Assembly: GCA_038496445.1 (NCBI GenBank)
Contig: JALMLS010000404.1
Location: forward strand, 1-64,000
Direction of reading: 5' to 3'
Length of the DNA: 64,000 nucleotides
From: Trichosphaerium sp. ATCC 40318
Lineage: Eukaryota; Protista; Tubulinea
Both the position numbers and the translations under genes were made by a program. The notes under the pieces are model-generated. The model had not been told where the DNA came from. It saw nothing but the letters and a program-made list of their open reading frames with translations, and made no database searches. Positions 8,950-64,000 of the stretch are shown here, piece after piece. Numbering within the stretch: the stretch's first letter is position 1; the number at the start of each line of letters is the position of its first letter.

Positions 8950-9633
8950 TAGTTAGTGTCAAATGAGTGTACTTAATTCAATTGCACAAAAGTGAGCACC
9001 CTTTAGTGCTTTAACAACTTCAGCAGTTATTAATTTGCGATTGAGGTAAATAGTATGAACGCCCACAAGCGCTTTGATACCTTTAAATGTTACTGCATTG
9101 CCGCTGAGGGTTATAGTATGAACACCAGCAAGTGTGATAACACCTTCATCTGTTATATTATTACAGTTATACAGTCTATCTTATGAATACCAGCAGGTGC
9201 TTTAAGACCTTCATCTGTTACATTCTTACACTGATACAGCTGTATCTCATGAACACCCTTTAGTGCTTTAACACCTTCATCAGCTACTGAAGTTTCACTA
9301 ATGTTAGCAGTATGAACACCAGCAAGTGCTTTAAGACCTTCATCTGATATTAAAGAATACCCAACATCAATCGTTTGAACACCTGCAAATTGTTTGATGC
9401 AGTTGTCATCAGAACAACATGCACCGTTAACATTGATATATGTGTTTTTTAGAATACCAGCGTGTTTTACGACTTGTACAAGAGCTACTTTTGTAATATA
9501 AATAGCGTCGTATCCAATTACGTCGTGAACAATAAAAGCAAGGAAACGGCAAGTTTGACAAGCGGAAAATCGCGATTTGTGTCAGGCGTAAGATATGCGC
9601 TACTATCTCTGTAAGTAGCTGTAATAAACTCAT
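8950..9633 (-). pseudogene. Disrupted F-box-like + 'AGVH' LRR gene
   Basis: MSLLQLLTEIVAHIL (F-box-like) then, after frameshifts, FAGVQTIDVGYSLISDEGLKALAGVHTANISETSVADEGVKALKGVHEIQL; same repeat as 33060-34343; intronless. Confidence 0.75.
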
Positions 9634-9991
9634 GATGTCGATATTACAACGTCTTGGGGTGGAAAGCGCAAAAGGTATTTGTGGTATGTTGTAAGATGAA
9701 GTACCTTTCGAATGCACGTGGTCTCTCGAGCAAAACGTTTGAAAGTGAGAAGGAACTTGACTAGGATGAAGGTATTTTTAGCAAAGAATCTTTCCCAGTT
9801 AGTTAACCATCTAGCGAAGCAAATGGTCTTGCGTCAGTTTACAACGTAAAGACAAATTTACGCCTACATGGAGCTGCACCCTAGGATCTTACAGTCCAAC
9901 ACATTCAAGAAAAAAATTGTGAGTTTTTATTTCCGTTGTGCCAACCGTTAAAAAGCGTCATTATTACTTCCAATTGGCTAAATAGGTTCAC

Positions 9992-10879
9992 ATGATACAT
10001 GCTATTCTATTCTTTAACGAAGAGCGCCAAGTGCGTTTAACAAAGTTCTATTCTCTTCTTGTACGCCAAATTATGAGCTCTTACGCTGTTTTGTGTTACA
10101 ACAAACGTGAATTAATCAACTACAACCAAAGGACGACGAGAAAAAAAAAGAATACCTCCACGATGTTATATCTCTACTGAGTAAGCGTAAAATACTATCT
10201 AGTTTCATAGATGGCGAATTGACAAAATGTAAGTACAAATCCCTTTTATATTGGTTTATATTACTTTCTCACGCGCAAGAGAAGGGGGAAAAGGGACGAA
10301 ACTCATATATAAAAAGGTTACCAACGTTTAAAGTTAAAACCGGCTCTACATCCATAACGATAGCTGTCAGGGATGTCATACATCTAACAATACTTTTTAG
10401 TACGCTAGACTGTTTATTGTATTCGTTGTTGATGATAGCGAGCCAGAATTGGGGATTCTAGAAATTATTGACACTTTGGTACTAACATCAGAAATTTTCT
10501 TCATTTTCCTTCTCCTAGAGATGACCTAATATTTTTTATTAGATGCAATGCCTTGATAAACAATTCAAAGATGTATGCGAGCTGGATATAGAACTCAACG
10601 TAGAGAAGGTAACTTTCCAAACCACGTGTCATCAAAAACTCATTTTTTTTTTTTCAATATTTTTTTTTTTTCCAAAATTTCTTTCACCAATGAGCTCTAA
10701 CGATTTTAAAGGTACATTTTGTTATTGATGAGATGATTCAAGGTGGTTTACTATTTGAATCAAATGTGGATGTTGTTATACGTAACTTAGAAGCCCAGAA
10801 AAAAGTAGACCAAACAGAAAACCCATTACGGTATAAATTAAGACGTGTCAAAGAATCAAAGGTTAAGATGTTTGGTTGA
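9992..10879 (+). CDS. Clathrin adaptor small chain, AP-3 sigma-like (multi-exon)
   Basis: MIHAILFFNEERQVRLTKFY; KLIYKKYARLFIVFVVDDSEPELGILEII; LDKQFKDVCELDI; VIDEMIQGG. Confidence 0.88.
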
Positions 10880-11197
10880 ACAACAACGTTGGATAGACAA
10901 TACACCTAGTGCAGTTTAGTGCACGCAAATGCGATGGCAGGAGGGGGTGAGGTTGAACTAGCTTTCAGTGTTTGGATGCAATAGTACAAAACCAAAACAG
11001 GAAACTTTTTGTGCAAGCTCTGCTCCATTTCTTTAGTTGTAACAAATACAAATTTTTACAAGCTATCTGATAGCGCTAATTTAGATTATTTTATTATCTG
11101 GATATTTTTTGATCTATTTTCTCCTTTGCGGATAGTTAAATGTAAAAACTTTGCGTTTTTCTTTTTATTTATTTTTTTTTTTACAAAAAAGTGTATT

Positions 11198-13959
11198 TTA
11201 ACGTCTTGTTTTACGTCTTTTATTGAATCGAGCACCACCAGCACCTTTTGGCATATTTTTGTATGTATCAAGGAATGCAGGGTAATCTTGTCCTATACAA
11301 CATATGTCAAACAAACAACACAAAACCAAGAAAAAAACAAAAAGACAGTGAAACCAATAACATTTTTTTACGTACCTGCATCAGTCATCAATTTAATTAA
11401 ATCTCCTGCTAGCCTGCGATCCCTGGCTGGGTTGAAAAAAGCCACAGCGGCACCTTTATGTCCTGCGCGTCCTACAAAAACCTGTGAGGACGAAGAAAAA
11501 AAGAAGCAAAGCAGGAAAAGATGGAAAAAAAGAAGAAAAATGTTTTGTACCTGTTCTACCAATTCGATGAACATAATCATCAATAGCATTTGGCATATCA
11601 TAGTTTATTACTTTAGATACTTTTGGTACATCAATACCTCTAGCTACTACAGAAGTCGCAACAAGAATCTTCAATCGATGTTCCTTAAAAAAATACAGTT
11701 AGTTGTTTTGATTTTATCCTTGTTATCATCTACCTTGAATGCATTGATAGCAGCTTCTCTTTCACACTGTATATGATCACCATGTAATGATGCTGATTTG
11801 TATCCCATATCATATAACTTATCTGAGAGCAATTGACATTGTCGTTTTGTTTCAACGAAAACTATAAAAAAAAATGAGGTTAAGACATGTCAAGTTTTAA
11901 TTTTTAACTCCGATTGTACGTACTTATAATATGTCCTTGTGTTGCCTTTAATTCATTTACAAGTGTTTCAACCTTATCACGTGGTGTTTTAATTAATTTA
12001 ACTTCTTGTGTAACATTTGACGCTGTTTCTCCAACACGTCCAATCTGAATAAAAAAGTAAGTACAATTTTTTTTGTCTTCATCAAGGGAATGCTCTATCG
12101 AGTTTTACAATTGCCAAACTCCGTGATATAACAAAAGTATATGTGTACATGATAAAAACTTAAAAGATTTTTGATAGAAGTAACGTAACGCCAACTTAAA
12201 GTGCGTTGTTTGAACAGCAATATTTGTTTAGAAAAATATACGTTCTAGCAAATAACGTACTTTTAGTAGACATCTGTGATCCCTTAGAAAATCGAGAGCA
12301 AGTCCTCTGATACCTTGTGGAAATGTAGCACTGAATAATACTGTTTGTCTTTTATCACCGGCTGATTAAGAGTTATAAAGTGGAAAAAACAAACATGTGT
12401 TTTGACACATTAGAACGTACAAGGCATTCCACTCTTTTCGACGATTTCACGAATTTGTGGCTCGAAACCCATATCCAACATACGATCTGCCTCATCCAAG
12501 CAAAGGTACTGTATATTAGCAACAGATACCACGCGCATATTTATCAAATCACCAAGTCTTCCAGGGGTTGCAACAATCATATCAACACCTCTTTTTAATT
12601 CATTGATTTGACCTTTCTTTGGGACACCACCATAAACAACACAACATTTCAATGGTGTTCCATTAGTGAACTAACAATATAGTTAATAATTATCACTATA
12701 GGAAAGGGTAGTCGATGACTTAATGACCAAAGAAAAGTTACGTCCAAAAAATTTGTTTTGAATATATTTTTTTTTTCGTTTACCTTTGCAGCTTCTTCGT
12801 AAATTTGGATTGCGAGTTCTCTAGACGGAGCAATGACAAGTGAAGTAGGATAAGCTGTTGCTCTATATTAAACTTTTTAGATATCATGTTCAAACTAGAT
12901 CGTAATAACATACTGTCTATTGAATCCTTTATGGAATGTATTTTCAACATTTTTTTGTAAATGCCTTGTCTTCTTTGCAATATAAGGGAACAAAAATGCA
13001 GCAGTTTTACCACTTCCTATATAAAAAAAAATACGTATTAATACATTATCACATACAAAAACCGAAAACTAAATGACATCCTGTGACGCCAAAGTGACAC
13101 ATGATTTTCAAAAAAAAAAAAGAAGAAATGTACCTGTTTGAGCACATGCCATAACATCGTATCCCTTTAATATGAGAGGTACGGCATACTGTTGTACAGG
13201 TGTAGGTTTTGTGTAATTTGCGCGCATGATGTTATGAAGTAAAAGCGGACCAAGAATCTCATTGGACTAGGTAAAAAAACAGTTAGCCGAATGAGTCAGT
13301 TAAGAAGAAAAGTTGCAAAAATGCTGACAGTTTTTTAGCGAATGCTTAGATAATTCGCTTTGTAGTTAAGAAATAATTCGTACGTCTTCTCCAAATGTAT
13401 CAACAGGCACTATTTTACCATCATCCGAAGTTTTAAAGCTGACAGGAATATCTGCGTATTTGTCAAAGTTAATGCCTGCGCCTTTTTGCTCGTATACGTG
13501 ATCATCGCCTTTCTCCTATACATGCGTTAAAATTCAGATTGGCTAAAGTGTAACAGTGTAATAATTTTTTGTAATAAATAGCAGAAAAAGGCGTATTTAT
13601 GCGATGGTATACGCATTTTAACGCGAATTATGCTTTTACTTGTTTTTTCTCACCTCTAGAATTTGTTGGCGTTTCTCACGGTGAGATCTTCCTGTAAACT
13701 GTATAGGACAGTTTTTTTGGCATTTGAATGGTTCAGCATGGCAGCTGGGGCAATTTGGGTCTGTACGTTTCCATTGTGGCTTATCTGATGACATTCTCGT
13801 CTTATTATACATCTCACGCTCATTATCATCTCGTTTACGTTTGGGTTGCAACTTTGTATTATTGTAGTGATGTTGAAACTTATTTCTATTGCCTGAAAAG
13901 CCCCCTCTACGTCCTCCGCGACCACCACGGCCACCACGGCCTCTTCCTCCTCGTCTCAT
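11198..13959 (-). CDS. DEAD-box RNA helicase, Ded1/DDX3/Vasa subfamily (multi-exon)
   Basis: RGG N-terminus, [71 protein letters not shown]. Confidence 0.95.
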
Positions 13960-15830: not shown

Positions 15831-15938
15831 TATTTTAATTAAGACGCTTGTTAAAACACGACTCTAGATCAACCTATTTTTATTTATTTGACAGTATTAT
15901 GGCTGCACCACATTCTTTTATTGTTGCGTATACTAAAA

Positions 15939-16991
15939 TTATTGAGGTATTTCTTCATCATCTTTGTATGTTGTACATATTAAAAGTTGTCCATTATCAT
16001 CCCACTCTTTGTACTCACCGTTTAATTTATCATCAACATATGTTGATTGTACAACGATTTGTCCATTATGATGCCACTTTTTGTACCCACCGTTTTTCAT
16101 ACCATTACTTATTGTAGTTTCTAGAGAGAGTTGTCCATTGGCATGCCAATGCTTAGTCTCACCATTTGGCTTGCCATCAACAAGTGTAAAGTGCATTGAA
16201 AGTTGTCCATTGTCATGCCATATCTTACAGTCACCATTTGGCTTGCCATCAACCAGTAGAGTATAACTTTCAAGCTGTCCATTCTCATGCCACTTTTTTA
16301 CACTAACATTTTCACCCTTAACAAACTCAACACTTATTTGTAGTATCCCATTTTCATCCCACCGTTTCACTTCTCCATGTTCTTTACCATCAGAATATGG
16401 AGTACAACTATGAAGTTGTCCATTCTCATACCACTTTTTAGCATCAATTTGGTCGCCATTAACAAATAAAGCAGTTAACAACAGAGTCCCATTTTCGTCC
16501 CACTGCTTCACTTCTCCATCTTCCTTACCGTTAACATATGTGATGGTTGAAGATAATTGTCCATTCTCATGAAACTGCCTCACTTCTCCGTCTTTCTTTC
16601 CATCAACAAAGGTCATGACTGTAGATAATTGTCCATTCTCATGCCATTGTTTGTACTCTCCTTTACACTTACCACCAGAGAACACTGTATAAATATGAAG
16701 TTGTCCATTTTCATGCCACTGCTTCGTTTCTCCGTGTCTTTCACCATCTTTCATCATGGTAGTGCGGCATATCCTGCCGCTATTATACCAATACATCCAC
16801 ATACCTTTTTTTTCAAGGTTGGCATTGTAATGCGTGTTCTTTGCAGCTCTTTTTGAGAGTATATGGAACTTTGCGAACGTTTCCTCGTTAAAAGAGCATA
16901 AATACCGTTGAATATCAAAGGGAAGGTCTAGTAGGTTAGGAGGGGTATCGTTTGTGGAATGTAAACCACGCTTTGACGATTTATGATCCAT
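15939..16991 (-). CDS. F-box-like + MORN-variant (YwqK-like) repeat protein, intronless
   Basis: N-terminal LLDLPFDIQRYLCSF; about 12 repeats of ~24 aa, consensus GE.KQWHENGQL...T..DG. Confidence 0.88.
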   Translation of the reverse strand: MDHKSSKRGLHSTNDTPPNLLDLPFDIQRYLCSFNEETFAKFHILSKRAAKNTHYNANLEKKGMWMYWYNSGRICRTTMMKDGERHGETKQWHENGQLHIYTVFSGGKCKGEYKQWHENGQLSTVMTFVDGKKDGEVRQFHENGQLSSTITYVNGKEDGEVKQWDENGTLLLTALFVNGDQIDAKKWYENGQLHSCTPYSDGKEHGEVKRWDENGILQISVEFVKGENVSVKKWHENGQLESYTLLVDGKPNGDCKIWHDNGQLSMHFTLVDGKPNGETKHWHANGQLSLETTISNGMKNGGYKKWHHNGQIVVQSTYVDDKLNGEYKEWDDNGQLLICTTYKDDEEIPQ

Positions 16992-20206: not shown

Positions 20207-21190
20207 ATGAAGCGTCAAGTATTAATAGCGGACAGTAATAAATATCAAATGACGACTAAACACTGTGGTGATACATCAATCATGCTAATAGACTTATTTT
20301 CACTACCGACGGAGATCTTGTTAAATATTATCACAAACAACCTTGACTGGCTTGATTTATCGTCACTACAACAATCAAACCATTATCTATGCGAAATGAT
20401 ACGAAACGACTCAGATTACATTTATCGGCATTTATACCACCAAAAATGGGGTCACAATGCCGACAAACTTGAGCGTGCTGTCCACGAACGAATCGCCAAG
20501 GATCTCAGTGCTCAACAAGCAATAGTAGTACAGTACAGAAAGGAAACACTTCAAGTACCGATAACAAAGTATAATTTGGATGCAGTCACGTGGAAAGAGA
20601 AGTATCGAAACAGATTGCGTTCAAATATCATCTCAGAGTTGAGTTGTGACAAGACCCATGTTCACCAAGGCGAGACAGTAACATTCGCACTCACACTTCA
20701 AAATATTGGTAAAACAACTGAGAGAATTTATCTCGGCTTTGGCTCCCATCTTAAAAACTGTCATATCATTGAATGTGGCCATGCTATTCATATCTGGAAG
20801 CCTGAAATCAAAGATCCTAATGGTTTTCTCGACAATTACAAGTTATATCATTCACCTCCTCCCGATTTATCAAATATGCGTTACTTTCATCTTGCAATGA
20901 CTCCAGGAGACAGACGTACATTTGAACTACCACTAATTTTCGACAAGTTAGAACTGCTGCCATCGTATACAAGCATACAATCTGTGCCTCCTGATACCTT
21001 ATCTCTTAAAGGCACATGTATGGAAGTATGTGTTGCCTGTTCCGAAACACCAAACGTATTCCCTCTTCAAGTATTTGCTAACATCAACACTAGTAAGGAA
21101 TCATGTAATGGTGTTTTTGGAACTGTTTTTGGACATTGCTCAGTTGTTACAAGCAATATTGTAAATCTAATAATGCAAAAGACATCGTAA
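20207..21190 (+). CDS. F-box protein with unnamed beta-rich C-terminal domain (family A, intact, intronless)
   Basis: DLFSLPTEILLNIITNNLDWLDLSSLQQSNHYL (F-box); C-terminal SELSCDKTHVHQGETVTFALTLQNIG..PNVFPLQVF..GHCSVVTSNIVNL; four further copies in window. Confidence 0.85.
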   Translation: MKRQVLIADSNKYQMTTKHCGDTSIMLIDLFSLPTEILLNIITNNLDWLDLSSLQQSNHYLCEMIRNDSDYIYRHLYHQKWGHNADKLERAVHERIAKDLSAQQAIVVQYRKETLQVPITKYNLDAVTWKEKYRNRLRSNIISELSCDKTHVHQGETVTFALTLQNIGKTTERIYLGFGSHLKNCHIIECGHAIHIWKPEIKDPNGFLDNYKLYHSPPPDLSNMRYFHLAMTPGDRRTFELPLIFDKLELLPSYTSIQSVPPDTLSLKGTCMEVCVACSETPNVFPLQVFANINTSKESCNGVFGTVFGHCSVVTSNIVNLIMQKTS

Positions 21191-21306
21191 TTCACCTTCA
21201 ATGTAACTGAAATAAAATTATTCTTCAAACACCATCTTGTATTTCACATATGTATTATTAACTCGAAAAAGGACTACTAATATCACAACAAGTGAAGGGA
21301 AACATT

Positions 21307-21745
21307 ATGAATTGTCCACCTGAGATCATTTCAGCTATTTTAGAACACGTGGGTGACAAAGATTTATTTCCTGTTGCTCAATCATGTTGGAACATGGCTG
21401 ATATTATTCATGATATTATTGGATACAGACATGTTTATCTCAAGCGATACACAGATATTCTAAAGATAAATCAGCACAAGGGTATGGATAACACCATAGT
21501 TCACCTAGACCGTATGGGGGATAGTACACTATTCTCAAAACTTGCTGGCTGTCGCACATTCAAAACTTCATCAAAAAATAAGATCTGAAAGCAATAGACA
21601 ACCTAACCACATTGATATTGCTGAGTACTATAAAATTAGAGATAACCATATGAAAGCACTTACAGGCGTTCATACTATCAATCTGCGCAGCTGTAAACAT
21701 GTGACAGATGAAGGCATTAAAGCACAGGTTTTCACTTGTATTTAA
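21307..21745 (+). pseudogene. F-box + LRR remnant
   Basis: MNCPPEIISAILEHVGDKDLFPVAQSC (F-box), frameshift, then a single LRR MKALTGVHTINLRSCKHVTDEGIKA. Confidence 0.7.
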
Positions 21746-22157: not shown

Positions 22158-24451
22158 ATGTGGAAGCTTTGTGTATTTGGTAATGCGTCTATGGTAATGT
22201 GGTAGTACTTACTTCAAACAGTATTTATGGTTACAGCTGTTTTATGCCATGATAAGCAATTTTGGGATAACGTAGAGGACTTTGAAGTGGTTACATCAAG
22301 TACTATTCAAGTTTTCTTGAAACCAACTAATGCTGATTGTTTGTAGTTGATTTATCAGTGTCTCCAAAACGAACCGCTGAAGGAGTTTACGTATTACAAA
22401 TGCATAAACATAATGGTTCGATGACGATCGAATGCATCAAAGCGTCGCCATTCACATTCGATTCTAGAGTGAGTGGGTTTTTTGTTCCAACTTTTTTTTA
22501 TTCCACATTTTGTTATTTAACCTGAGATTGTAGATTATCTTAAGCTCAGGAAACAGTTCAAATTACCTTCCTATTCCAGCAAATACCTTCAAGTCTATCA
22601 ACGACAACTATCGCTTCCGGTTTATGACTCATAAAGATGGAACGATAGAAGGTATTCTGTTTGTAAATGATGAGATGCTTGTAATTGAACCTGCTTCAAA
22701 GTAAGCCGAGATAGCTGACTGCTAGGGCTAACAGAAGGACTCTTTTTTAGGCACATAGACTTCATGCAACCACACCATTTGGAAAAACTTGGATCAGGCA
22801 CACACGTGATTCTGAGGTAATGTTTCACTGTAGAAGGTTCCTTAGCTTATTTATTTAAAGGCGCAACAATCTACAACACGAAGAATCACTTGGCTGTGGA
22901 CTTTGTAATGACATGATTAAGTCAAAGAGACAAAACCGTACTCGCTCAAAGCGGTCAAGAAGGTTTGTAGTTTCTTTTTGTTGTACTTAAGACAGACTTT
23001 TATTTAAGAGCATACCCCATGGGAGATAAACGACCGTTAGTTCCTCCACCTAGCGGTTGTCCTTCATCGTTAAAAGTTCTCCACGTGGTATAAGAACTGC
23101 ATTATTATTGTGTTGCACTAAACAGTTAACAGGCAGTGGTTGTTGATCAGAGTCTATACGACAATCGAGGAGTTGACGGTTCAGTAGACTACGTCACTAA
23201 CAGTTGCGACAGTTTTCCCAAGTCTTTACTAACCACTATTTGCGTAGACATTCACAATGTGAATGCCATATATAACAAAGAACTGGTAAGTATTTCTCTG
23301 AAATACAAGTACTAAACTGTTTACTGATTCTTTTTTTTTTGAAACAAGAACGTGGAACTTATTGTATCAGAGTTGCTTATAATAAAGAATCGGGATGATT
23401 ATTGTACAACAAAAGTAAAAAAAAACCACAAAGTCCGTTGACAGCTTTTTTTTAGCCGCCGGTTGGCAGTGTTCGAGAAGAGGTGATGTACATAGTGATT
23501 TTACTACATGGACATGGAGGCATTATTCAAATTCGCCGCCAGTGGCTTTACTATATCATGACTGCAGCGGTGGTAACTTATTAGGAAGAGCGCATATGGA
23601 TGGTGTTTGTGGCTTTCAATCGTATCAAGCTGAAGTGAAGGAACTGAGCAACTCTCGCAAACGAACCATCCTCACTGCACATGAAATCGGACATCTTTTA
23701 AATATGGATCATGACCCTGACAACTCAGGTATAATGAAAGAAGAAATACCAGAGAACAAGTGCGTATTTGTTAGTATCTAAACGTCACAGCTTGCTCATA
23801 TTGTTTTTTGTAGCTTGAATAAATGGCAACAGTTTTCGAGGAATAGTCAAGCAGAGGGATGTACAAAACTTGGAAGAAGTTATTGCCTTACCTCCATTAA
23901 TGACGAACACTTATACGCTCTTCGAAAGAACAATGAACAGGGATATGCTTTAACAACACAACAGCAACCTAATGCCAACAACGACAATGTGTATCTCTAC
24001 AGCTATAATGATGACAACGAAAATCAACATTGGGTCGAAACAAAACACAGTAGCGGATATTATATCTACCGTAAACGTTATACAAACTTTTGCATGGATG
24101 GCAACAGCGGTGGCAGCAATAGACAGTGCGTAATTTCTTTTCAAAAGAAGTAAACAGACTCTTCTCTAATTTTTTCTTAATCAGGAACGTGAAGCTTCAC
24201 AGTTGTAGTCAAGATAATGTTAATCAACATTGGGAGAAGTTGCATGTATCTGGTAATACATATAGATTAAAAAAGCGTAATGTTGCTTTCTCTATTGATG
24301 GTAATGCTGGAGGATCAAACAACCAGTATGTTTCATTTCAATTGTGTCAGCATGTTTTTTAATTCTTTTTGAAATTAGGAATGTGTATTTGTGGCCTTCC
24401 AGCTCAAGTAATCAGAATCAGCAATGGGTCTTTGTAACACCATCAAAGTAG
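22158..24451 (+). CDS. Secreted M12B (reprolysin/ADAM-like) zinc metalloprotease with C-terminal ricin-B lectin domain, multi-exon
   Basis: Signal peptide, prodomain with LGCG cysteine-switch-like motif and RSKRSR cleavage site, HEIGHLLNMDHD zinc motif with GIM Met-turn, three QxW repeats (NQHW, NQHW, NQQW). Confidence 0.88.
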
Positions 24452-24759
24452 ATTGGCACATTTATGCCTTGCATGTAATAGGTTTACTTTTGTATTGTGC
24501 ACAGCGCAAATAAACCCTTTTGGTTCTTTTTTGAATTGTATCCATTATTTTGCGCAAAGTTTTAAAGTCTTGTAGTAAGTATTTGGACTGTATGTCTTGT
24601 ACACGTGACCCAGCATGTGATTCGAATATAGAAGATACTTACATATATAGAAAGTTCAATCACAACAAACCTAAATAGTTTTAAAAACGTTTAACGTTAC
24701 TTTGACGAAGTCTCCTAAAAACTGAATCAGACTGTTTTTGACTTCTTGGCATACTAAAT

Positions 24760-25517
24760 GACTCAGATTACATTTATCGTCATTTATACCACCGGAAATG
24801 GGGTCGTGACGCTGAAGAAATTGAGTCTGCTATCCACCAAAGCATTGCTATTAGTTTACAAAATGAATATCCCCTAATGCCAATGCCAAAGACTTTGTAT
24901 AATTTCAATGCAGTAACGTGGAAAGAAAAGTATCGAAACAGACTGCGTTCAAATATCATCTCAGAGTTGAGTTGTGACAAGAACCATGTTCACCAAGGCG
25001 AGACACTCACATTCACACTTACACTCGAGAATATTGGTAAGACACCCAAGACACTCTACCTCGGCCAGGGAGCAAGCCTTGATGAATGTCATGTTATTAA
25101 AGGTGGTAGTGCAATATATATTTGGAAGCCTGAAGTCAAGGATCCTGAAGGATTTCTCAACAATCATAGGTGCCCTAATATAATATCATCTTATATAAAC
25201 TGGCAGGGTTTTAAGGTCATAATGAATCCAGGAGATACACTTACATACAAGATTCCGTTAAATTTTCAAAAGGTGAATAGGACACGTTTTCGGGTAATGA
25301 AGGAACGGATTCCACATGTTGATACACTTTCTCTCAAAGGCTTACTCATCAAGTATGTGTTGCTGGCCCTAAAACGCCGGATGTGTTTCCTCTTCAGGTA
25401 TTTGTCAAAGTTAATACTTTAAAAGAAAAATATAAAGGGGTTTATACTACTGTTGGACATTGTTTAGTTGTTACAAGCAATGTTGTAAATCTTACAATGT
25501 ACAAGACACAACAATAA
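24760..25517 (+). pseudogene. Family-A F-box gene copy, 5' truncated and frameshifted
   Basis: Nucleotide match to 20408-21190 begins abruptly at GACTCAGATTACATTTATCG (F-box lost); frameshift near 25345 precedes the VFPLQVF segment. Confidence 0.85.
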
Positions 25518-25939
25518 AGCATTACACAATTGTTTTTTTACAAAATATTAACCTTGTTCAACTAAGTGGAGCTCTTGCTAAACTCTCATTGGCTGCCATT
25601 GAAGCACTCTTCTAATTTGGAGGAATCTATGTAGTTTTCACTGTGTTGTGCCTGACAACTATTAATTCTAACATAGGAGTTCTGCCAACGCCCAACAATA
25701 GTGTAATAAGTGTATAAAGCTGTATTATCATGAAGGTTTATTGAGTAGATTGTGGTCAAGTACTGACATTTTGGAAGAACCTTCTTTTCTTCTGTACCAG
25801 TGACGTATAGGTTGATTAATGCTGCTCGCAGGTACAAGGGTGATCACATCCTTCAAACACTCATGTAGACCGTATTCTTTAATGAGATTCCATAGAGGTC
25901 ATTGTTCTTATTCTACAGTTTGTTCCCGTATTAGCTATG

Positions 25940-26200
25940 CCTGCAAGGCGCTTATGCAATAGCACTGCACAAAGCAGTTAATAACAATGTTGATTTCACA
26001 GACTTAAAGTATAGAATTTGCTTGTGATTGCAGAGTAACTGATGATCATCTTCAACAACTTGCTGGGATACATAAAATAAGTTGTCGTAGATCACATATC
26101 AGATGATGGGATTAAAGCATTATCTGGTGTTCATACGATTGATTAATGTCATTACCAAGCTATTACGTGCAAAGCATTGGCTAGTGTTCGCGCAATTAAT
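25940..26200 (+). pseudogene. Fragment of the 33060-34343 LRR gene
   Basis: Near-identical to the reverse complement of ~33850-34065 (CAAGGCGCTTATGCAATAGCACTGCACAAAGCAG...), with deletions and stops. Confidence 0.85.
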
Positions 26201-26690
26201 TGGCATTAATCTTTAACTTGTTACGGTTTCACAGTAAGAAAATTCAAAAAAATTGTGACCTATTTGAAACCCGCATATGTTGTGAAGGCTACTTTTTAAG
26301 AGGCTACTCTTCGGAAATATGCCTTGAAAGAATTGTATAGCTGTCAGCGATTTTCCTACGACTAGACCATTGTGAGGTGACGTATGTGGACTCTTGGTTG
26401 TTGATTACAACTTGACATGCCTATTGTATTAGCGAAGGTTCACTGACGTATCCATCGTTGCTTAAAACGTACCAAACGTAGCTGATAAAATACATGGCAC
26501 TCGTTTCTTGATTCACTACTTTCTCAGTAATATAAACTACCGAAGTTCAATGCCTAGAGAAGCCATCATAGGCAGGCATTCAGGTAAACGCTTTTTCGTG
26601 TAGATTTACTGGTTAGGAACGCTATGACTTAAACAAGTTTGCACTCAAGTCAGTTTGTAACCGGTTTTGAAAAGTTTAACAAACTAAATC

Positions 26691-42957: not shown

Positions 42958-43238
42958 GTTTGTACTATTACAAGAAACTCGAACAAGATAGTCAACGAAA
43001 GTCGATGTTTTACATTCCGATAAATCACGTGGTTGTCACTCTATCACGTCTGACTTTGAGGCCAATACAATATAATTGTTGTTTGCACAGCTTTTTGCAA
43101 AGTTTGCTCACATTTGTTGCTTCATTCTCATATTCCATTTCAGTAAGCACAACCGCCTGACAAAAAAGTACATTGTCGCTAGAATGTACTCCATATTTTA
43201 TTGTAGTGAGGGAGTATAAAATCATGATTTTTGTTGCT

Positions 43239-45421
43239 TCACTGTATGACTCCCTGTTTATTTCTGGATACATTACTCCACGAGTAAGGGAAAAGTTGTT
43301 CTGGTCGTAAAACTATGAGTACAATTGTTACAACAATCACAATCACTAAAAGTAGAGCAACAAAGCCACCAATATAATATCCAATGTTGCTTTTGGAGCA
43401 AGTTGTATCGAATATTGTGATAAGTAAAGTGTTTGAGGCTAAAACAAACTTGCATTAACAAAACAATAAAAAAGAAGATGCTCTGATACTTTTAGTAACT
43501 GTTGCTTCATGAAGGCAGTCGTTATCGAATGAGGGAATGTCAAAAACACAACTGTTAGTTTGGACGTTGATTAGAATTCGTATTGGAGGCGTAGCACGGT
43601 TTCCAACAGCCAATACAGCCCCTAAGTGGAGTACGTTTACAAGAGGTTAGCAAGCGGGGTACTTGCCTTTAATATCTACACATCCAGAGACAGTAATATT
43701 AAAATCTCCATTTATTATGATTGTACTTCCATTTGTCCATGTCAAGTCACCTTAAAAATCGTGTTAGCACCCCCTTGGTCATATTGAAACCAGTACCTGT
43801 GATAATTATATCTCCCAAATCCAGTTCAAGGATATCTGGAACATTGAAATCACCGTCTATTATCCATGTATCGTTGATGCAAACTTCATTGTTCAGAACA
43901 GATTCTTTACCACCACATAAGCACATTGTGTTTTCTTCAACACCTCCTCTTGATATGCAATCGCTTTGAGTTTGAGGCGGAGGATTGTTGTCAGTAGGAT
44001 TAGTTAGATTAATAGGTATATTTATCTCCTCTTTTATCGTATTGCTGTCAGCTATCCAAAGCGTTGTGGTATTTGGAACAAATATGGCACTCTGAGATTC
44101 ATTAAGCTGAGTGAAGCTTCGAAGTATTTCTCCTATTGCAATATTACGGAGAGTAAAACTGTGCGAACCGACTGTACCGGCACCATTAAGAACTATAATA
44201 TTGAAAGCATTAGCCGCTATTATAGTGCCATGTACATAGTCTTCGCTGTATGTTACACGTTGAATATTTAAGTGTGAATTAATCGAAGATACGTCTGCCA
44301 ATACTGATTGTTCTGTTGACAAGTCGTCTTTTTATTGTTTAGTATTAGCTTATTAGTGCCAACGTACTAATATCGTATTCATAAATAAACGTTTTGTCAG
44401 GGACTATAACGGTAGTATCCGAAAGGAAGTCACAACCCTTAAAACATATATATCAACAAGGTTGGAAATGGAATATTGTAACCACTGCTCGCACCTGAGG
44501 AGAAAAACCAGTCCAAGTTCGTGATATAGTATCAGTCAAAGCAGGTTTGATATCACCAGCGTTGAACTTATAAATCTGCACACCAAGTTTGGGAACGGCA
44601 ACGCACATGAATTGCTTATCAGGGCTGAAACTTATCTGTCTAATATTTTGTGGGTTTGGTATCAGTCTTGATGAGAACCCGTCTTTATAAGAATAATCAA
44701 TAGCGTCAAATATCACCTGTGAAAATAAAAAACTATTAATAGAAAAATCACGTGATAAAAATCGAGTTCCAAAAAAATTCAAAAACAAGACAGGCTATCC
44801 AACACCTTTCACTGGGTTAGAAATTAACTAAAACAAGGGTGTAGGTACTGAACAAAACTCAAATGAAGTTGTAATGTAAGAAAAACCGAAAAATAAATTA
44901 ATTGAAACGCACAATTTCGTTCTGTTTAGCGCCTGTGGCGTAGATTAAATTATTACGGATAGCAATACCTTGTAAAAACTAATTAACATCAATCTAAATA
45001 GCACGTGTATGTACCTTGAGGATGTGCGTCTCTGAACTCGTCATTATTCCACGTTGTTATGGTCTTATTTTCAATAGATTGCCCTTTAACTATTTAAATC
45101 GCCCAGAGACATTGTACTCAGTAAGAATATCTTACCGTCTTTGGTTAAGGTTAAAATCTTTCCAGAAGTTTCCTTTTCAGCGTAGGCAACTAGTAGGTTC
45201 CCATCTGGTAACCATACCATATCTTGTACAACAGCATCTCCATCCAACTCAAAGGAAGCGGCTTTAATAAAAATAAATAAAGTGATTTTAATTAAAGCTT
45301 TAGCTACAGCCATGCTGTTATTGTAAGGTTTATTATTGCTACTGGTTAGCGTCAACGAACCTTTACAAATGGTTATAATAACCACTAAGTTTAATAACCC
45401 ACTAAGCCATGGTGACACCAT
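43239..45421 (-). CDS. Type I membrane protein, tandem copy 2 (multi-exon)
   Basis: Paralog of 40682-42957 with the same exon layout; signal peptide MVSPWLSGLLNLVVIITIC; near-identical TM exon. Confidence 0.7.
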
Positions 45422-45530: not shown

Positions 45531-46389
45531 ATGACATCTAAACGCATCATACGTTTTGATAGCTGTTCACAAGATACTACTGACTTGTTTTCGCTACCTG
45601 TTGAGATACTTTTGAGTATTATCATTACTAACGACATGACATGGCAAGATTTAGCTTCATTACAACAATCAAACCATTATCTATGCGAAATTATACGAAA
45701 CTCGTCAGATTACATTTATCGACATTTATATCAACAGAAATGGGGTCGCGACGCTGAAGATATCGAGGTGTTCACACAAACAAGTTGAAAGAGATTTACA
45801 ACGCTTCCGTAAACAAATCGTTGATATGCCATTGACGAATTTGTACAAGCTTGATGCAGTCACATGGAAGGATAAGTATCGAAATAAACTACTTCCAAAC
45901 ATCATCTCAGAGTTGAGTTGTGATAAGAGACATGTTCACAAAGGCGATACAATAACATTCAAGCTTACTCTACACAATGTTGGTACAACAGAAGAGGTAT
46001 CCCGAACAGTTTGTATTACAGATAGCCGTGTTATCTATATTTGGATGCCTCAAGTACAAGATCCTACAGCATACTTTAACAACATGAAGCTTCACAAGTT
46101 CTTTCGATATCATGGCTCATCAACAATTACAATTAATCCAGGAGCTTCGAGCACCTACAAAATACAATTTCAGTTTGAAACATCGGGAGATACTGGTACA
46201 TTCTATCTTCAAGGTAACACATGTGACATTTATGTTGCTAACAATGCCACACCAAACGTGTTTCCTCTTCAAGTATTTGCTAGAATCGTTACATCAAAAG
46301 CACAATATCACAATTATTCAAGCGGGGAGTATGGACATTGTTCACATGTTATTAGTAATGTTGTAAACCTCACATTGCACAAAACATAA
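45531..46389 (+). pseudogene. Family-A F-box gene, full length with one frameshift
   Basis: ORF 45531-45788 (F-box DLFSLPVEILL) and ORF 45826-46389 join via a single frameshift at ~45773 (..EVF/HKQVERDL vs ERAVHERIAKDL in the intact copy). Confidence 0.8.
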
Positions 46390-47334: not shown

Positions 47335-49021
47335 ATGAAGCACTGCTCTTTGATATATGCCCTGGCAGTAATGCTTACGATTTTTGGTACAGTCTTGTAA
47401 AAGCTTTTACGAAATGCCTTTTTGTTACCTCGGCTGTTTTTTGAATCAAACCATTCTCATTGATTTTTTTAGCCATCTCAGACGCTCATGGTGATGAGCC
47501 CGAGCCCCCTTGCCCATCTTGCGTAATTGGAGATTATGCGCCCTCTGAACTAAGCTGTTGGGCGCGCTTTGTAAACAGAGGACCGAATTGTCTCATAATA
47601 CGAAAGAATCACGTGGATAGAAACAGTACGTTCTCTTATTTTTTTTTTCTTCCAAAACTCCGGAACGCAAAAAAGCAACATCACCTCACAAAACACAATG
47701 TGATTTGTAGTATCCTAGTCATCTCTCACCCTTTTAATATAGTTGAGCTTAATGCTGCTACGAATTGTATTATATTCAATAGAGGAGTTAGATTCTATGG
47801 TACAATTACTGGAAGCAACGGGAACGATTGTATCTTTTTAAGAAGAAATGCAAAGGCATACTCAAGAATGAATCTTGGACGCGGAAATGATTACATACAT
47901 ATGGCAAAAGGGAGTAAAATCCTTAATGATATTGACATGGGTACGTCATAATATTGTGTATACGAGACAGTTATTTTAAGTGTGATGATACAAATCTCCC
48001 CGAAAATGATCAAACTGATCTTTTGTTTTCTAAAGGAGATGGTGATGATTGTATAAAAGGCGAGTTAGCTTTCATTGAAAGGGACCTGGAACTTGGGAAA
48101 GGCAATGATCAAGCATACTTTTATACCATTGCTTCGAGGTAAGTTTACTTAGGCTTCAGCAGTTTATTTATAGAAGTTGATTTTTTTTGTGAACCCTTTT
48201 TTATTGACTTTTTGTTTTGTAGCGCTGGTAGCATCTACGGCGGTGACGGGGATGATCTAATAATTATTGATAACTTTTATTTTTTCAACGGAAACGATGA
48301 ATTGATAGAAGCGGCTACAGGAGGAACAACAAAGAGGGAAGCGCTCAGAAAACCAAAAAGGAGAGAAATAACAATTGAAGATAAAAATAGTAAGCATCCT
48401 TTGACCATTTCTTAGTTTTGTTCTTACAGAGTTTATTAAGAGACAAAGTTTGCTATGAACACCAAAAGGGGTTTCTATCCTAGTTTCATACACGGATCTA
48501 TAGATGGAGGTCGCGGAAACGATTGCATAGATGTGTATGAAGGCTATGTAGCTAATGTTATTGGTAAGGATTTTTTATTTTTTGTTCCGTGTTTTTTCTA
48601 TTCCTTCCACGTGCTTCCCGACAACGTTCTACGAAAATATAGAACTTTTACCAACAGTCTATCTTTGTTGTCCAACATCAGCTTAGATGATTACTAAACC
48701 AAACTAGGAGGTAGAAACGATGATTGTATAACTATGATCGATGTTTTAATTCATGACATCAATGCAAATGCTGGTGATGATTGGATATATGCCGCTCATT
48801 GGGCTATAGAACCAGAATATATTCGTAGTGGCGGTCTTAAAGGAGGTTCAGGAAACGACTACATTTTATCAGACGATTATGAACGATACGACTCAGAACT
48901 TGGTGTTTTAGATGGCGGTAGTGGCGTTGATACATGTTGCCATGAGAGATTTGAAACCAGTCGAAGATGCGAGAATGATCCATCTGTGTGTCCTCCGCCT
49001 ACGACTAATGATGGCCCTTGA
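47335..49021 (+). CDS. Secreted protein with RTX/hemolysin-type GGxGxD beta-roll repeats (multi-exon)
   Basis: Signal peptide; repeats GSNGND, GRGND, GDGDD, GKGND, GGDGDD, GGRGND, GGSGND, GGSGVD; C-terminal CC..CE..C. Confidence 0.75.
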
Positions 49022-49180
49022 GCTTATTGTAGTGTCACATGACACAAATAAATAATAAACTATTTTTATTGTTAAAGTGATCTTGTTTATTGCACACTGC
49101 TAGGTGAATGTCTGAAAATAACATAAAGACAAAACACTACCAATAACGGCTTGGACAAATACGCATTTGTATTGTTAATA

Positions 49181-50485
49181 CTAAACTCTGCGAACACAAC
49201 ATGGAGAAATTCGTGACTCACAATTGATAGTTTCAAGGACAGTCCCTGATACGCAACACCTGTAATATAATTTGTTAGAGCATTTTCATTTGAATGTTGT
49301 TGTCTTTGTATCTTACAGGTCATTGCCTTCCCCTCCATCAATATTTGGTAGATCACTACGCCCTCCTCGAAAGCCTCTCAGAATGATCACATCATCGCCT
49401 CCTCTACCATCTATACCTTGTGTAGATCCGTCAACTACAGAAAAAATTATTACACCATAAAAACAATCAAAAAAAAAACAAACACACTTATGGTAAAGTC
49501 TGTAATCTTTATAATATCATCATTTGATGTAGTGAATAGAGACGAAAATGATACATTTTCAAGTTCAATGTGTCTACATCCTACAATATGAATGAACCTA
49601 GTTTGAGAAAAAATGTGACTGTACCAAAAAAGGACACTGCTATAGTTGACTTTGCAAATATTTTTGAATCAACATGACTGCTAGAAACTACATTCAAAGT
49701 TAACAATGTAAAATCCCATTGATGAGTACCAACTGCATTATCACTTAATATAGAGTCTTCAATTTCTAAACAATCTGCTCCACCTCGTATATTCACACCA
49801 GTTAACGTTGATTTTCGTCCATTATAAGGAAGAATCTGAACACAATCTGTTGCTGATGTCCTAGGACTAAATGTTCTAACTTGACTAAAGTAAAGATTAA
49901 CAATAATTTGATAAAAGGTCTCTATTACCCAGAAGATGTTCCTTCAAGTATAATTGTATTTTGCGCGGGTGACTCAAAGTTATCAAGCGAGATATCTCCT
50001 TCAACCACTGAATCTATTGCGTGGACACAGTGGGAACCACCAACAATTCTGATGTCACCTTCGACTGTAGCGTTCACAACTTGAACACAATAATTACCTG
50101 CTGTGCTAGTTCTTACATCTCCTATTGTGCTACCAGGCATCACCTTTAAACAAGCACCGCCACGTGGTAGAAGAATATCTCCAATAGGCGTTGGTGTATC
50201 AATGATCAAACAATCATCACCTTGCAAAATCTCTGTAAAACGGTATCAATACAAACAGTCTTGTACTCTTTTTTAAATACACGCACGTGATGGATCTGTT
50301 ATTGTTTTACATGGCGGAGACGCGAAATCGCATTCATTAATACATACAGTACACTCGCAGTCGCATTTCTGACATAGAGACTGTGTTGTAAGCACTAAAC
50401 ACAGTTAACTACTATTGAACCATCTGTATGATTACGCACATAGCCACAGCACTACTGTAGACAACAAATTAAGATATGTAAGCAT
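49181..50485 (-). CDS. Secreted beta-helix/RTX-like paralog (multi-exon)
   Basis: Signal MLTYLNLLSTVVLWL; GDDCL, GGACL, GGADCL, DGRGGDD, DGGEGNDL|CCVSGTVLETINCESRISPCC; shares C-terminal architecture with 47335-49021. Confidence 0.7.
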
Positions 50486-52399: not shown

Positions 52400-52950
52400 G
52401 ACAAACTGCTAAGTGAATGTCTGAAAATAGCATAAACTATTTTTATTGTTAAAGTGAGCTTGTTTATGTGTAAACTGCTAGGTAAATGCCTGAAAAGACA
52501 AAACACTACCAATAACAGCTTGGACAAATACGCATTTGTATTGTTAATACTAAACTCTGCGAACACAACATGGAGTAATACGTGACTCACAATTGATACT
52601 TTCAAAGACAGTCCCTGATACGCAACACCTGTAATATAATTGGTTAGGTTAACACCCTTTTTACTTGTTGATCTCACATGTCATTGCCCAGCCCTCCATC
52701 AACAGTTGGTTGATCACTACGATCTCCTCTATAGCCTCTTATAATAATTGTATCATCACCTGCTCTGCCATTTATAAATGCTGGAGGTGCGAGCCCATCA
52801 ACTACAGAAAATGAATACAAAACAATAGAAAAGAAAAAAAAAAACTGACTCAGAGCGAAGTCTGTAATATGTATAACATCATCCCCACTTGTGCCGATTA
52901 GAAACTGAAAAGCTACATTTTCGAGTTCAATGTGTCTACATCCTACAACA
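52400..52950 (-). pseudogene. Orphan duplicate of the last three exons + 3' flank of the 49181-50485 gene
   Basis: High nucleotide similarity to 49055-49590 including intron positions; encodes ..DGGLGNDM|CCVSGTVFESINCESRITPCCVRRV*; no matching upstream exons. Confidence 0.8.
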
Positions 52951-52964
52951 TGAATGCATTTTAT

Positions 52965-53590
52965 TTATTTCGCTACAACGGTTTCAGATGCAACAGGGTA
53001 GCTTGCTGGCTCATATGGTATTGGTGAGCTTTTAGGAGCGTATGTTATTGGAGAGGCTGGTTCATATGGTATTGGTGAGCCTTCTGGAGCGTACGCATTT
53101 GGAGATATTGGTTCGTATGGTATTGGTGAGCTTTCAGGAGTGTATGGGTATGGTGAGCTTGTTGGTTCGTGCGGCTTTGGAGCTTCAGCTGGCGCAGTAG
53201 CATTGCTAAGCTCAAAGTTCCAGCAAGGCCTCTGCTTACAGACACTTGTACAATCTTTTATCCACGAGTTACTAGGAGCAACAACGATATAGTTTGTACG
53301 GTTTGCTTTCCCATTAAAGAAGTATAATCCTTGTACTTCCTTGCAATTCGTAGCCTGCAAACCGAAGGAAAAGGAAAAGTACTTTTCTCCTTGTCCGTTG
53401 TAGTAGCTTACTTCAAATTCGCCATACGATCATGATTCAAAGGCGTAATTGACCGTTTGTACGTAGCTTGTTTTGTTTACTTTCAAAACAACGCCTAAAT
53501 CATCGTATCGGTTGCATGGAGTAGTACAGTATGCAACAGTGATCAATGCGAACACTGTAGCGAGTAGTGGCAACGTTCTTGAGAAATCCA
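52965..53590 (-). CDS. Secreted Cys-containing protein with Pro/Ser/Tyr-rich repeat tail; in-frame TGA at 53430-53432
   Basis: Signal MDFSRTLPLLATVFALITVAYC; frame continues through one TGA; tail repeats (S/G)SPIPYEP.SP..YAP. Confidence 0.6.
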
Positions 53591-62061: not shown

Positions 62062-62409
62062 TTCCTCTGACGAGCACTCACAATCATTATAAAATCCCAA
62101 TCGAAAAAAAGTTCGGAAATCTGAAGACCCATTTAACAAGGTTCTCTGTGGCTTTTTTTAATGTAATTGGCTGCAGAAACCTCGCTCAAATCACTCAAGT
62201 TGCAATAAAATAACTTTTTAGTTTAATCTAAACACGACTTTGTTTATTCCCTAGTACTCGTACTTCAGATCATTGTGTATACCACAAGCCAATTGCAATA
62301 TGAACACTTGATAATTGTAACATAGGCAAAGTTGTTAAAAGAGACTAAAATTTAGCTAACTGGTTTTTTTTTTATGTCAAACTACAATTTAGAGGCCTAT
62401 TTTCTTTTT

Positions 62410-62778
62410 TCAGTTATTTGGTCCAATGGCGTAAATGATGATTTTGAAAGATACAATAAGAAAACCCCAAAAGGCAAAGAAAATCCCAAAGCTTCTTGCT
62501 AGAACACCCATCATACTTAATTTCTTATCAGGCTCTTCATCTCCAAAAAACATGCTCTCAATGATTGCCGAGCCCCACGTTACACTACAATCTACCTTAT
62601 AAGCCAATATTAATATTAAAACATTTTATAATGTACATAAGGCGATTCCAAAGCTTCCCAAGATTGTTCCAGTCATCACAACCGCGCAAAATGTAATCCA
62701 TAATAAATTAAAACTCTGTTTTCGTGGTGCTCTTTGTTGCTGAAAACGGATATTTACGGTTGTTTTTCGTACAAACAT
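62410..62778 (-). CDS. Small membrane protein of unknown function
   Basis: Two hydrophobic segments (LLWITFCAVVMTGTILGSFGIAL; SFGIFFAFWGFLIVSFKIII) separated by a probable intron. Confidence 0.4.
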
Positions 62779-63170
62779 TGTCCGTTGCTGAATAAAACTT
62801 GGCAAATTTGTGGGAGGTTAAGCAATCTGTAATTTTCAAAACAAATCCGTATTACTTAATCAGGCTATGAAAGGCCTAGTATGCTTCTAAACAGTCAACT
62901 GCACATTCTGACCCTGTCATTTTTCATCACAAGAACATTGTTTGACGGACACATTCTCAGTATTGTGGTCATGATAATGCTTCCGTAATACGGCCATGAC
63001 ATTTCTACTCTGTGAATTGAACTAATCAATAGTACCCTCTATGAGTGATGTTCAAGTTTGTGACGTTCAAAGTGTAATTCCACCCAAAAAACATTGTTGC
63101 AAAGTGATGTTCAATGTGTTACATAAGCGGTTCTAAATTTTACTTGTAACAACTTCATCTAAGTGTTGCA

Positions 63171-64000
63171 ATGCTTCCCGTCAGTAAAAGAAACTTCATC
63201 GATTGTACACCATCAACCAATTTCCAACATCTACCCTCTGATGTATTTTTTACTATTGTATTTGATATGTCAAGTAACCCTATCATTATACCTATCCACA
63301 TGAAACGTGTATGCCATCTATTCTACAAGTTTGTATGTAGTGTATCAAACAATATAATAACTCGTCAAATGAAGCGTATTGGATGCCTTGACTTAAAGTG
63401 TTTGAAAGATCCTTCACAAACACTTCAACAGTTTTGGGAAAGAACAATTCCAGCATTGTATGATTATCCCGCTGTGCCTTTAAACAACCTTGCCAATACA
63501 CCCAATGAATTCTATAGGAGTATTGGTGACTTCAGGTTCAGTGCCAATGCCGTTCATTTGATACAACACTGCCTCGAATCCACGATTGTTGAGTACTTTG
63601 CAAATGGCTACTTTAACAAATACGAAGAAGCTAAACATGTTGAAGCTTTATCTACAAAACCCGCCAACAGTAAACTAGATATATCATTTAAAGGAGAGGC
63701 AGTTGAGTCTTTTGCAAACCTTTTTGGAGTTGAATACGATCCTGAAGACGATGACGAGTATAAAAGAAAAAATGATGACAAATTGAGCCAAGATGAAGAT
63801 GTTAGTGATGAAGAAGAGGACGATATGCTTGATACCGATAACAGTACTGACAATACTTTCTTAATTCTACTTTGTCTCATGCTGTTACTTAGCCAAGGAT
63901 ATGTTCAAGAACAAGAACATGCTTGAAGATGTGCCAAAGGAAGAACATACAAAAAGGTTTTCTATAAAACTGTTCTGGTATTGGATTTCTCAAGGCGACA
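63171..64000 (+). CDS. F-box protein with histone-H3-like fold segment and acidic patch (likely continues beyond window)
   Basis: FQHLPSDVFFTIV..MKRVCHLF (F-box); DFRFSANAVHLIQHCLESTIVEYF resembles H3 [24 protein letters not shown]; probable intron 63845-63892 extends the frame. Confidence 0.6.

Follow-up and report, generated by a model that had tools for sequence, protein, structure and literature searches.

The question raised by the stretch of DNA analysed here, positions 1 to 64,000 (forward strand) of contig JALMLS010000404.1 from the protist Trichosphaerium sp. ATCC 40318 (assembly GCA_038496445.1), is how a group of intron-free F-box genes came to lie in both orientations among intron-bearing genes, and whether viruses, reverse transcription or duplication of the DNA itself brought them there. 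This stretch of 64,000 nucleotides, referred to as the window, has a GC content of 37.66%. An initial annotation had counted about 12 F-box members in it, and nine of these 12 loci do fall into two families, named A and B, whereas a MORN-repeat gene, a supposed MORN relic and an open reading frame (ORF) starting at 63171 do not belong to them. The answer proposed, with a probability of about two in three, is that a region of the host genome harbors a cluster of two F-box families that grew by duplication of gene pairs followed by decay, family A sharing its ancestry with genes of viruses. On this reading the region is an ordinary piece of chromosome of an intron-rich protist, in which two F-box gene families, both lineage-specific and free of introns, lie clustered together.

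Lineage-specific expansions of the F-box superfamily, with birth-and-death evolution, are established in plants and nematodes, and F-box proteins of the FBXL type are substrate receptors of the SCF (Skp1-Cullin-F-box) ubiquitin ligases. The sharing of genes between amoebae and giant viruses is established as well. As regards Trichosphaerium sp., the accessible text of the draft genome paper reports a GC content of 37.69%, a mean exon length of 154 bp and an intron density of 8.7 per gene; in the 1,581 gene models that match giant viruses best, F-box and MORN are the domains encountered most often (PMC10521059).

The two families and their copies were defined by tblastn with the intact ORFs and by self-blastn, and the breaks were counted from frameshift-aware alignments and three-frame readings, the broken copies being searched as separate pieces and the housekeeping genes exon by exon. 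The nine verified copies, in which the leucine-rich repeats (LRRs) of family A are of the cysteine type, are as follows:

8899-9824 (-): family-A pseudogene with a decayed F-box, about 7 LRR units, disrupted by 4 or more in-frame stops and 1 frameshift

20207-21190 (+): intact, uninterrupted family-B gene of 327 amino acids, with a probable F-box at about residues 28-80 followed by a near-orphan domain

21292-21745 (+): family-A remnant with an intact F-box ORF of 98 amino acids, about 2 LRR units and 1 frameshift, 3'-truncated

24751-25508 (+): family-B copy, 5'-truncated, with most of the F-box gone, 1 frameshift and no in-frame stop

25812-26254 (+): family-A copy downstream of a family-B copy, 3'-truncated and shortened by one internal deletion, with 2 or more frameshifts and 1 or more in-frame stops

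33060-34343 (-): intact, uninterrupted family-A gene of 427 amino acids, an F-box followed by about 14 LRRs

35229-35555 (-): internal fragment of family B, truncated on both sides, with 2 in-frame stops, located on the strand of the 33060 gene and upstream of it

40242-40453 (+): 3' fragment of family B, the last 60 or so codons, with no internal break

45531-46389 (+): family-B copy of nearly full length, with a start codon, an intact F-box piece, 1 frameshift and no in-frame stop

Family A had been described as an F-box joined to LRRs at 8950, 21307, 25940 and 33060, and this description holds at all four loci, on the combined evidence of tblastn and self-blastn, Pfam, a profile match to FBXL2 and an AlphaFold2 (AF2) model. 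The intact 33060 gene matches LRR_6 of Pfam with an E-value of 1e-51, and its F-box taken by itself reaches 18.1 bits, under the cut-off. The curated Pfam cut-offs (24.3 bits for F-box-like, PF12937, and 20.5 bits for F-box, PF00646) are both exceeded by the ORF at 21292, with 26.9 and 21.6 bits, respectively, and relatives P0133, P0139 and P0172 pass too. A local hidden Markov model (HMM) of the F-box also detects the decayed F-box of the 8899-9824 pseudogene (E 1e-6), a copy otherwise recognized by tblastn and three-frame reading, and the F-box remnant in the 25812-26254 copy (E 0.004). Searched against the PDB, the family-A profile retrieves FBXL2 as the top match (E 7e-29) with the F-box aligned, and its N-terminus further aligns to the F-boxes of FBXL5, FBXW7, TIR1, DIA2 and the Legionella protein AnkB. 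The AF2 model of the 33060 gene, built from an alignment of 37 rows, has a mean predicted local distance difference test (pLDDT) score of 85 and displays about 14 LRRs after the F-box, with three N-terminal helices at residues 13-21, 25-34 and 36-45 (pLDDT 80-89). Foldseek places it closest, among PDB structures, to FBXL2 in the GGTase3-FBXL2-SKP1 complex (6o60_C), with an E-value of 3e-18 over 366 columns. Pfam, profile and model make the predicted F-box at the N-terminus of family A a solid assignment. By homology we infer that family A consists of FBXL-type SCF substrate receptors capable of binding Skp1: the F-box would dock on Skp1 and the solenoid of cysteine-type LRRs would bind the substrate.

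The nearest relatives of the F-box genes of the window are transcripts of a single MMETSP assembly (P0001, P0126, P0133, P0137 and P0172), and a further relative, P0189, is labelled MMETSP0405 'Tricho...'. The ORF at 21292 shares 47-53% identity with P0126 and P0133, and the 8899-9824 pseudogene shares 40% identity with P0126 over residues 97-284. The LRR similarity of the 21292-21745 remnant was detected by tblastn with the intact ORFs. These two transcripts, P0126 and P0133, which are the relatives of the 21292/8899 subfamily, possess some 100 extra residues ahead of the F-box that are absent from the whole window. At the DNA level, the stretch 33072-33895 of the intact LRR gene exhibits an internal periodicity with units of 66/132 bp that are 70-82% identical.

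Family B had been described as an F-box joined to an unnamed domain at five loci. The family is confirmed at all five by tblastn and self-blastn; its F-box is detected by Pfam only below threshold (E 2e-4 and 4e-4). The F-box-like match reaches 21.7 bits (E 1.7e-4) in the first 100 amino acids of the 20207 gene and 20.5 bits (E 4e-4), at the same position, in the 45531 copy, both below the cut-off of 24.3 bits; with the Pfam scans taken together, such sub-threshold matches occur at this place in three members. Aligned by hhalign to the F-boxes of family A alone, the N-terminus of family B gives an E-value of 8e-5 and a probability of 62% over 41 columns, and a single-sequence search of the PDB with this N-terminus yields no match. 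An F-box at the N-terminus of family B is accordingly graded as probable, at the level of sequence comparison.

The C-terminal domain of family B has few relatives. A full HMMER pass with the family-B query over 1.84 billion representatives matched only P0001 and P0002, the former an MMETSP transcript 48% identical to family B, the latter a prokaryotic surface protein made of DUF7507/DUF11/CARDB repeats, matched by phmmer in ten stretches with an E-value of 1e-7. In the 45531 copy, Pfam DUF11 reaches 17.4 bits (E 0.006), below the cut-off of 24.6, and spans positions 8-109 of 114; in hhalign, the family-B domain aligns to the units of P0002 with a probability of 78% over 32 columns only, a reversed-sequence control giving 0.1%. 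Profile searches of the PDB with family B returned no match with one alignment and only spurious matches with another. It is a reasonable guess that the domain is an Ig-like sandwich of which the first third resembles DUF11/CARDB. Presumably it is another substrate-binding module, and family B most likely encodes F-box receptors whose recognition domain is new.

The other three loci of the initial annotation are of a different nature:

15939-16991 (-): intact MORN_2 (YwqK-type) repeat gene of 350 amino acids, with 12 repeats of about 24 amino acids

15594-15938 (-): claimed MORN relic of marginal signal, in frame with the MORN gene and downstream of it

63171-63926 (+): uninterrupted orphan ORF of 251 amino acids with an acidic tail

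The gene at 15939-16991 had been read as an F-box joined to MORN repeats. Its MORN part is real, MORN_2 (PF07661) matching with an E-value of 3e-44 and 144 bits against a cut-off of 29.6, and the twelve units are spaced by 23-24 residues. The F-box part falls away: the N-terminus of 60 amino acids shows no F-box match with Pfam or with the local F-box HMM, both at E <=10, hhalign gives a probability of 1.7% over 9 columns, and the sole match in a PDB search is an unrelated enzyme with an E-value of 0.3. Within 15985-16643 the DNA consists of periodic units of 72 bp, 70-82% identical, and the internal periodicity of both the LRR and the MORN genes shows that the number of repeats grew within the genes. 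The best relatives of the MORN gene are bacterial YwqK-type proteins, which come top by E-value, and proteins joining MORN_2 to DUF5758 or DUF7666. The relative with the highest identity is P0008, encoded on a contig of 349 kb and 26% GC together with HSP70, RFC and an mRNA-capping methyltransferase; because of this gene content and composition the contig is regarded as giant-virus-like. In IMG/VR, scans made with the MORN protein and the LRR protein singly turned up nothing closely related. As for the relic, its best tblastn score of 20.8 bits (shuffle mean 15.7) is equalled by 4 of 150 shuffles, and neither the repeat-unit HMM nor Pfam finds anything in it. The 63171 ORF, taken earlier for an F-box joined to a histone H3-like domain, carries neither signal: no F-box was found by Pfam or the local HMM (hhalign probability 0.4%), and no histone fold by Pfam, with the whole ORF or its middle part, or by PDB search, all at E <=10. 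In the MORN gene and in this ORF the resemblance to an F-box is limited to a tetrapeptide of the LPxD type, and neither should be classed as an F-box protein.

Among the nine verified copies, two are intact, one per family, and the other seven are broken or fragmentary, which agrees with the birth-and-death evolution proposed earlier. The contrast in gene structure is equally borne out: the intact members, which rank 1, 2, 3 and 5 among all ORFs of the window, are uninterrupted and intron-free, whereas the ClpB, EF-G-like, DEAD-box, VTT and protease/ricin genes are split; the copies do lie on both strands between unrelated genes, being flanked by multi-exon host genes. Depending on the copy, the similarity at the nucleotide level varies widely. 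The 25812-26254 copy is a recent partial copy of the 33060-34343 gene with 88-93% identity in self-blastn, and by the same means the family-B copies are related pairwise, 24751-25508 to 20399-21184 with 69% identity, 35229-35555 to 25009-25276 with 81%, and 40242-40453 to 21124-21192 with 88%. Two other features that had been attributed to the repertoire found no support. Rapid diversification is not shown, the ORF pieces of family B, taken as they stand, giving synonymous divergences (dS) of 1.0-1.4 and ratios of non-synonymous to synonymous divergence (dN/dS) of 0.27-0.39; such ratios are not a signature of rapid adaptive diversification, and the family-B duplicates are old and have, through most of their past, evolved under purifying selection. 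Nor is a recent swapping of recognition modules supported. Between F-box segments of family B the identity is 53-77%, and between the two families it is only 13-26%; therefore each F-box has evolved jointly with the C-terminal domain that it is attached to, and nothing points to a recent exchange of modules between the families.

The arrangement of the copies provides the main clue to their spread. Three times, a family-B copy is followed by a family-A copy on the same strand within 1 kb: 20207 to 21292 (+), where the remnant starts 100 bp downstream of the 20207-21190 gene, 24751 to 25812 (+), and 35555 to 34343 (-). When the copies are placed at random, three such B-then-A pairs arise in 56 of 100,000 trials (P about 6e-4). 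Taken together with the DNA-level duplicates of the region and the lack of retroposition marks, these ordered pairs make the segmental duplication of a two-gene cassette the best account. According to the scheme proposed here, a B gene and an A gene would form an adjacent pair on the same strand, and the cluster would have grown by segmental duplication of this pair at the DNA level, in direct as well as inverted orientation, in a region that also duplicated unrelated multi-exon genes. Most copies would then have decayed, until one intact gene was left per family. The copies of the window would be old, host-like in composition and situated outside any integrated viral genome, and family A would share its ancestry with the F-box/LRR proteins of giant viruses, both Mimiviridae-like and pithovirus-like. 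A transposon carrying the cluster as cargo was considered and rejected, since self-blastn reveals no terminal or flanking repeats around the copies.

Several observations weigh against this account. The intergenic DNA shows no detectable homology between the cassettes, the youngest pair included, and the cassette is therefore deduced from arrangement only. The two halves of this youngest pair diverge unequally, with 81% identity for B and 88-93% for A, which could mean separate events or gene conversion. On the side of family B, the F-box lies below the Pfam cut-off in every member, P0001 having no Pfam match at E 0.01, and the AF2 model, derived from an alignment of 5 rows, has a pLDDT of 34 and is unusable, so that a DUF11-like fold is suggested by no more than 32 aligned columns.

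The link with giant viruses, claimed at first for the repertoire as a whole, stands for family A and fails for family B, which has no viral relative among the 1.84 billion representatives. The best BFVD fold matches of the 33060 model are Hyperionvirus proteins (39-40% identity) and an F-box protein of Tupanvirus soda lake (34% over 467 columns), followed by LRR proteins of Pithovirus LCPAC101/102 (36-40%) and then by Catovirus, Mimivirus LCMiAC01 and Harvfovirus; two LRR proteins of an insect poxvirus occur among the weaker matches (ranks 41-42). According to the accessible text of the genome paper, the viruses matched here by family A are also named as top matches there (PMC10521059). The top match of a word-index protein search with family A is P0123, which has no recognisable F-box and is encoded on a dense contig of 29% GC along with RNA_pol_N and thymidylate synthase. 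On this giant-virus-like contig (L003, 8001-11042), P0123 is directly followed by a second LRR_6 gene, so that the viral side has tandem paralogues as well. Another relative, P0138, combines an F-box with LRRs and adjoins DUF723 and TnpB genes. With identities of 34-40% to its best viral fold matches, the kinship of family A with giant-virus proteins, as judged from sequences and a predicted model, is regarded as real. The window, nevertheless, is not an integrated giant-virus region: multi-exon host genes lie between the copies, the GC content of the F-box genes (36-38%) is host-like compared to the 25-29% of the giant-virus-like contigs, and Pfam scans of the ORFs and ORF pieces of at least 75 amino acids in the 64-kb window found no viral hallmark family, be it capsid, polymerase B, packaging ATPase or transcription factors.

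Retroposition, of which poly(A) tails and target-site duplications are the marks, had been suggested by the initial annotation as one way by which the copies spread, processed retrogenes being scattered by reverse transcription and their fragments resulting from 5' truncation. The intact members are intron-free, and the 24751 and 40242 copies, 5'-truncated with their 3' ends kept, look the part. Against this, the sequences downstream of eight 3' ends contain no A-rich tract (at most 10-14 A per window of 20 nucleotides, the background having a mean of 11 and a 95th percentile of 15), the homology of four family-B 3' ends stops at the stop codon with no common 3' untranslated region, and self-blastn finds no direct repeats flanking the copies. 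No reverse-transcriptase ORF occurs among the ORFs scanned, no intron-bearing parent gene was seen, the known relatives being transcripts or viral genes, and the retroposition of single mRNAs does not produce two different genes recurring as an ordered pair; the explanation is thus highly improbable. Sequencing errors offer a different way to dispose of the pseudogenes, which would be intact genes spoiled by indel errors of long reads, with no birth-and-death at all. In this respect it matters that the published Trichosphaerium assembly, as its accessible text states, was built from Nanopore and PacBio reads (PMC10521059), and that the 45531-46389 and 24751-25508 copies have one frameshift each and no stop. 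The frame changes of these two copies nevertheless lie outside long homopolymers, the longest run being 4, a usual length in the background; in addition, the 5' part of the 24751 copy is missing, and the several in-frame stops, the truncations and the internal deletion of the other copies cannot result from indel errors. Assembly error can account for one or two breaks at most, and as a general explanation it is very improbable. The 45531-46389 copy could have become a pseudogene very recently, or its frameshift could be an error of the assembly; a short intron as the cause of its frame change was rejected, because the homologous stretches of the two frames overlap in tblastn and leave no room for one.

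Transfer from virus to host is a more serious contender, though an unlikely one. It holds that the F-box families, or at least family A and the MORN_2 gene, came from Mimiviridae-like or pithovirus-like viruses and were amplified afterwards. It draws on the identity of 34-40% with the best viral fold matches compared to 23% with the cellular FBXL2, on the AT-rich, dense contig of P0123, the gene neighbours of P0138 and the large contig of P0008 described above, on the absence of introns from genes of an intron-rich genome, and on the alien-index tables of the Trichosphaerium paper, which, in its accessible text, list many such genes and are accompanied by their classification as virus-acquired (PMC10521059). 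Similarity alone, however, sets no direction of transfer; the F-box+LRR combination is of ancient cellular origin, and the capture of host genes for repeat proteins by viruses is a known process. The lack of viral relatives for family B and of hallmark genes in the window, the host-like composition, the age of the duplicates (dS 1.0-1.4) and the bacterial YwqK-type proteins heading the MORN matches by E-value all speak against such a transfer. Returning to a cluster grown by pair duplication in the host region, it is tempting, although improbable, to go one step further and to regard the B-A pair as a co-inherited module of the Trichosphaerium lineage, whose two SCF receptors would act or be regulated together against giant viruses that carry the FBXL-like half, the Ig-like domain representing a new class of F-box recognition domain without viral or cellular counterpart.

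The conserved genes in the surroundings of the copies are split into short exons, and include the following:

260-2181: pieces of a ClpB/Hsp104 gene, conserved

4285-5728: VTT-domain gene

12410-12652: exon of a DEAD-box helicase gene

23542-24153 (+): exon of a reprolysin/M12-type metalloprotease, then a ricin-B lectin exon

near 54.7 kb: PPR gene

60.1-62.1 kb: EF-G-family gene

The DEAD-box helicase exon, with an RGG-rich ORF upstream of it (12410-13959, -), represents a housekeeping gene of the host that separates the 8899 pseudogene from the MORN gene. The protease and ricin exons (23542-24153, +) are probably parts of a single secreted multi-exon gene located between two F-box cassettes. 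A scan of the window for tRNAs revealed no gene, and an Rfam scan no match. A 255-amino-acid ORF at 11009-11776 was rejected as a gene, being of low complexity and having a TTG start. Self-blastn further disclosed two direct duplicates in the second half of the window. In the first one, 40675-42767 and 43224-45256 are 79% identical over about 2 kb, non-ORF DNA included; they correspond to a multi-exon gene of the minus strand without Pfam family, whose first exon (45086-45421) is signal-peptide-like. In the second one, 49050-49594 and 52425-52956 are 78% identical and lie among ORFs with no family assignment. Close to them are ORFs with repeats of the GGxGxD type at 47460-49021 (+), for which a weak match to RTX calcium-binding repeats (HemolysinCabind, E 8e-4) stays below the cut-off, and a proline-rich ORF at 52965-53360 (-) containing tandem repeats of 27/51 bp (53005-53165 in Tandem Repeats Finder, TRF).

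The general phenomenon is of two known kinds, an F-box repertoire specific to a lineage and evolving by birth-and-death, and a sharing of genes with giant viruses, and it has been published before for Trichosphaerium on the scale of the genome, as the accessible text of the genome paper attests (PMC10521059). The window agrees with that text in its GC content, its richness in introns, the types of domains and the best-matching viruses; a local cluster, a two-gene cassette, a pseudogene fraction and an orphan C-terminal domain are not described in it, and virus-to-host transfer is taken there as given (PMC10521059). New here are the arrangement in cassettes, the large proportion of copies that are dead, the finding that retroposition is not supported, and the architecture with an orphan domain. 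The local picture is one of F-box genes residing in normal host chromatin, spread by pair duplication rather than by retroposition and with most copies dead, and it calls for caution, as gene models of this kind cannot all be counted as working virus-derived genes. The combination of an F-box with a near-orphan Ig-like domain would be a previously undescribed architecture. The direction of transfer of the FBXL genes, if resolved, would tell whether giant viruses have armed themselves with ubiquitin adaptors of their hosts or have supplied the hosts with them.

Compared to known systems, family A most closely follows the FBXL proteins, such as human FBXL2, Skp2 and FBXL17 and plant TIR1, which likewise consist of an N-terminal three-helix F-box followed by cysteine-type LRRs (LRR_6/LRR_FBXL15); it differs from them by an identity of only about 23% to FBXL2 and by repeats built on an unusually regular unit of 22 residues. 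Beyond its own lineage, its closest relatives are the F-box/LRR proteins of giant viruses (Hyperionvirus, Harvfovirus, Catovirus, Tupanvirus soda lake, Pithovirus LCPAC101/102; A0A3G5A5V3, A0A6N1NWW2, A0A481Z518 and others), which possess the same type of repeat, are 34-40% identical over 320-470 columns and are in some cases annotated as F-box proteins. Unlike these viral genes, the genes of the window are placed on a host chromosome among intron-bearing neighbours and have a host-like GC content, and family B has no viral counterpart. The C-terminal domain of family B resembles, at its start, the start of the DUF11/DUF7507/CARDB Ig-like repeats of prokaryotic surface proteins, but only about 32 columns are confidently aligned, the Pfam score is sub-threshold and the PDB offers no match. 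The MORN gene shares 33-45% identity across its repeats with the YwqK-type MORN_2 proteins of bacteria and the DUF5758-MORN and DUF7666-MORN proteins of giant-virus-like contigs, and its N-terminal 60 residues are unlike the N-terminal domains of all three. With respect to the F-box expansions of plants and nematodes, the families of this single 64-kb window differ in that dN/dS, computed over whole ORF pieces, amounts to 0.27-0.39 and gives no evidence of positive selection; they share with these expansions a growth by local tandem or segmental duplication, a high number of pseudogenes, few conserved orthologues and a variety of C-terminal recognition domains.

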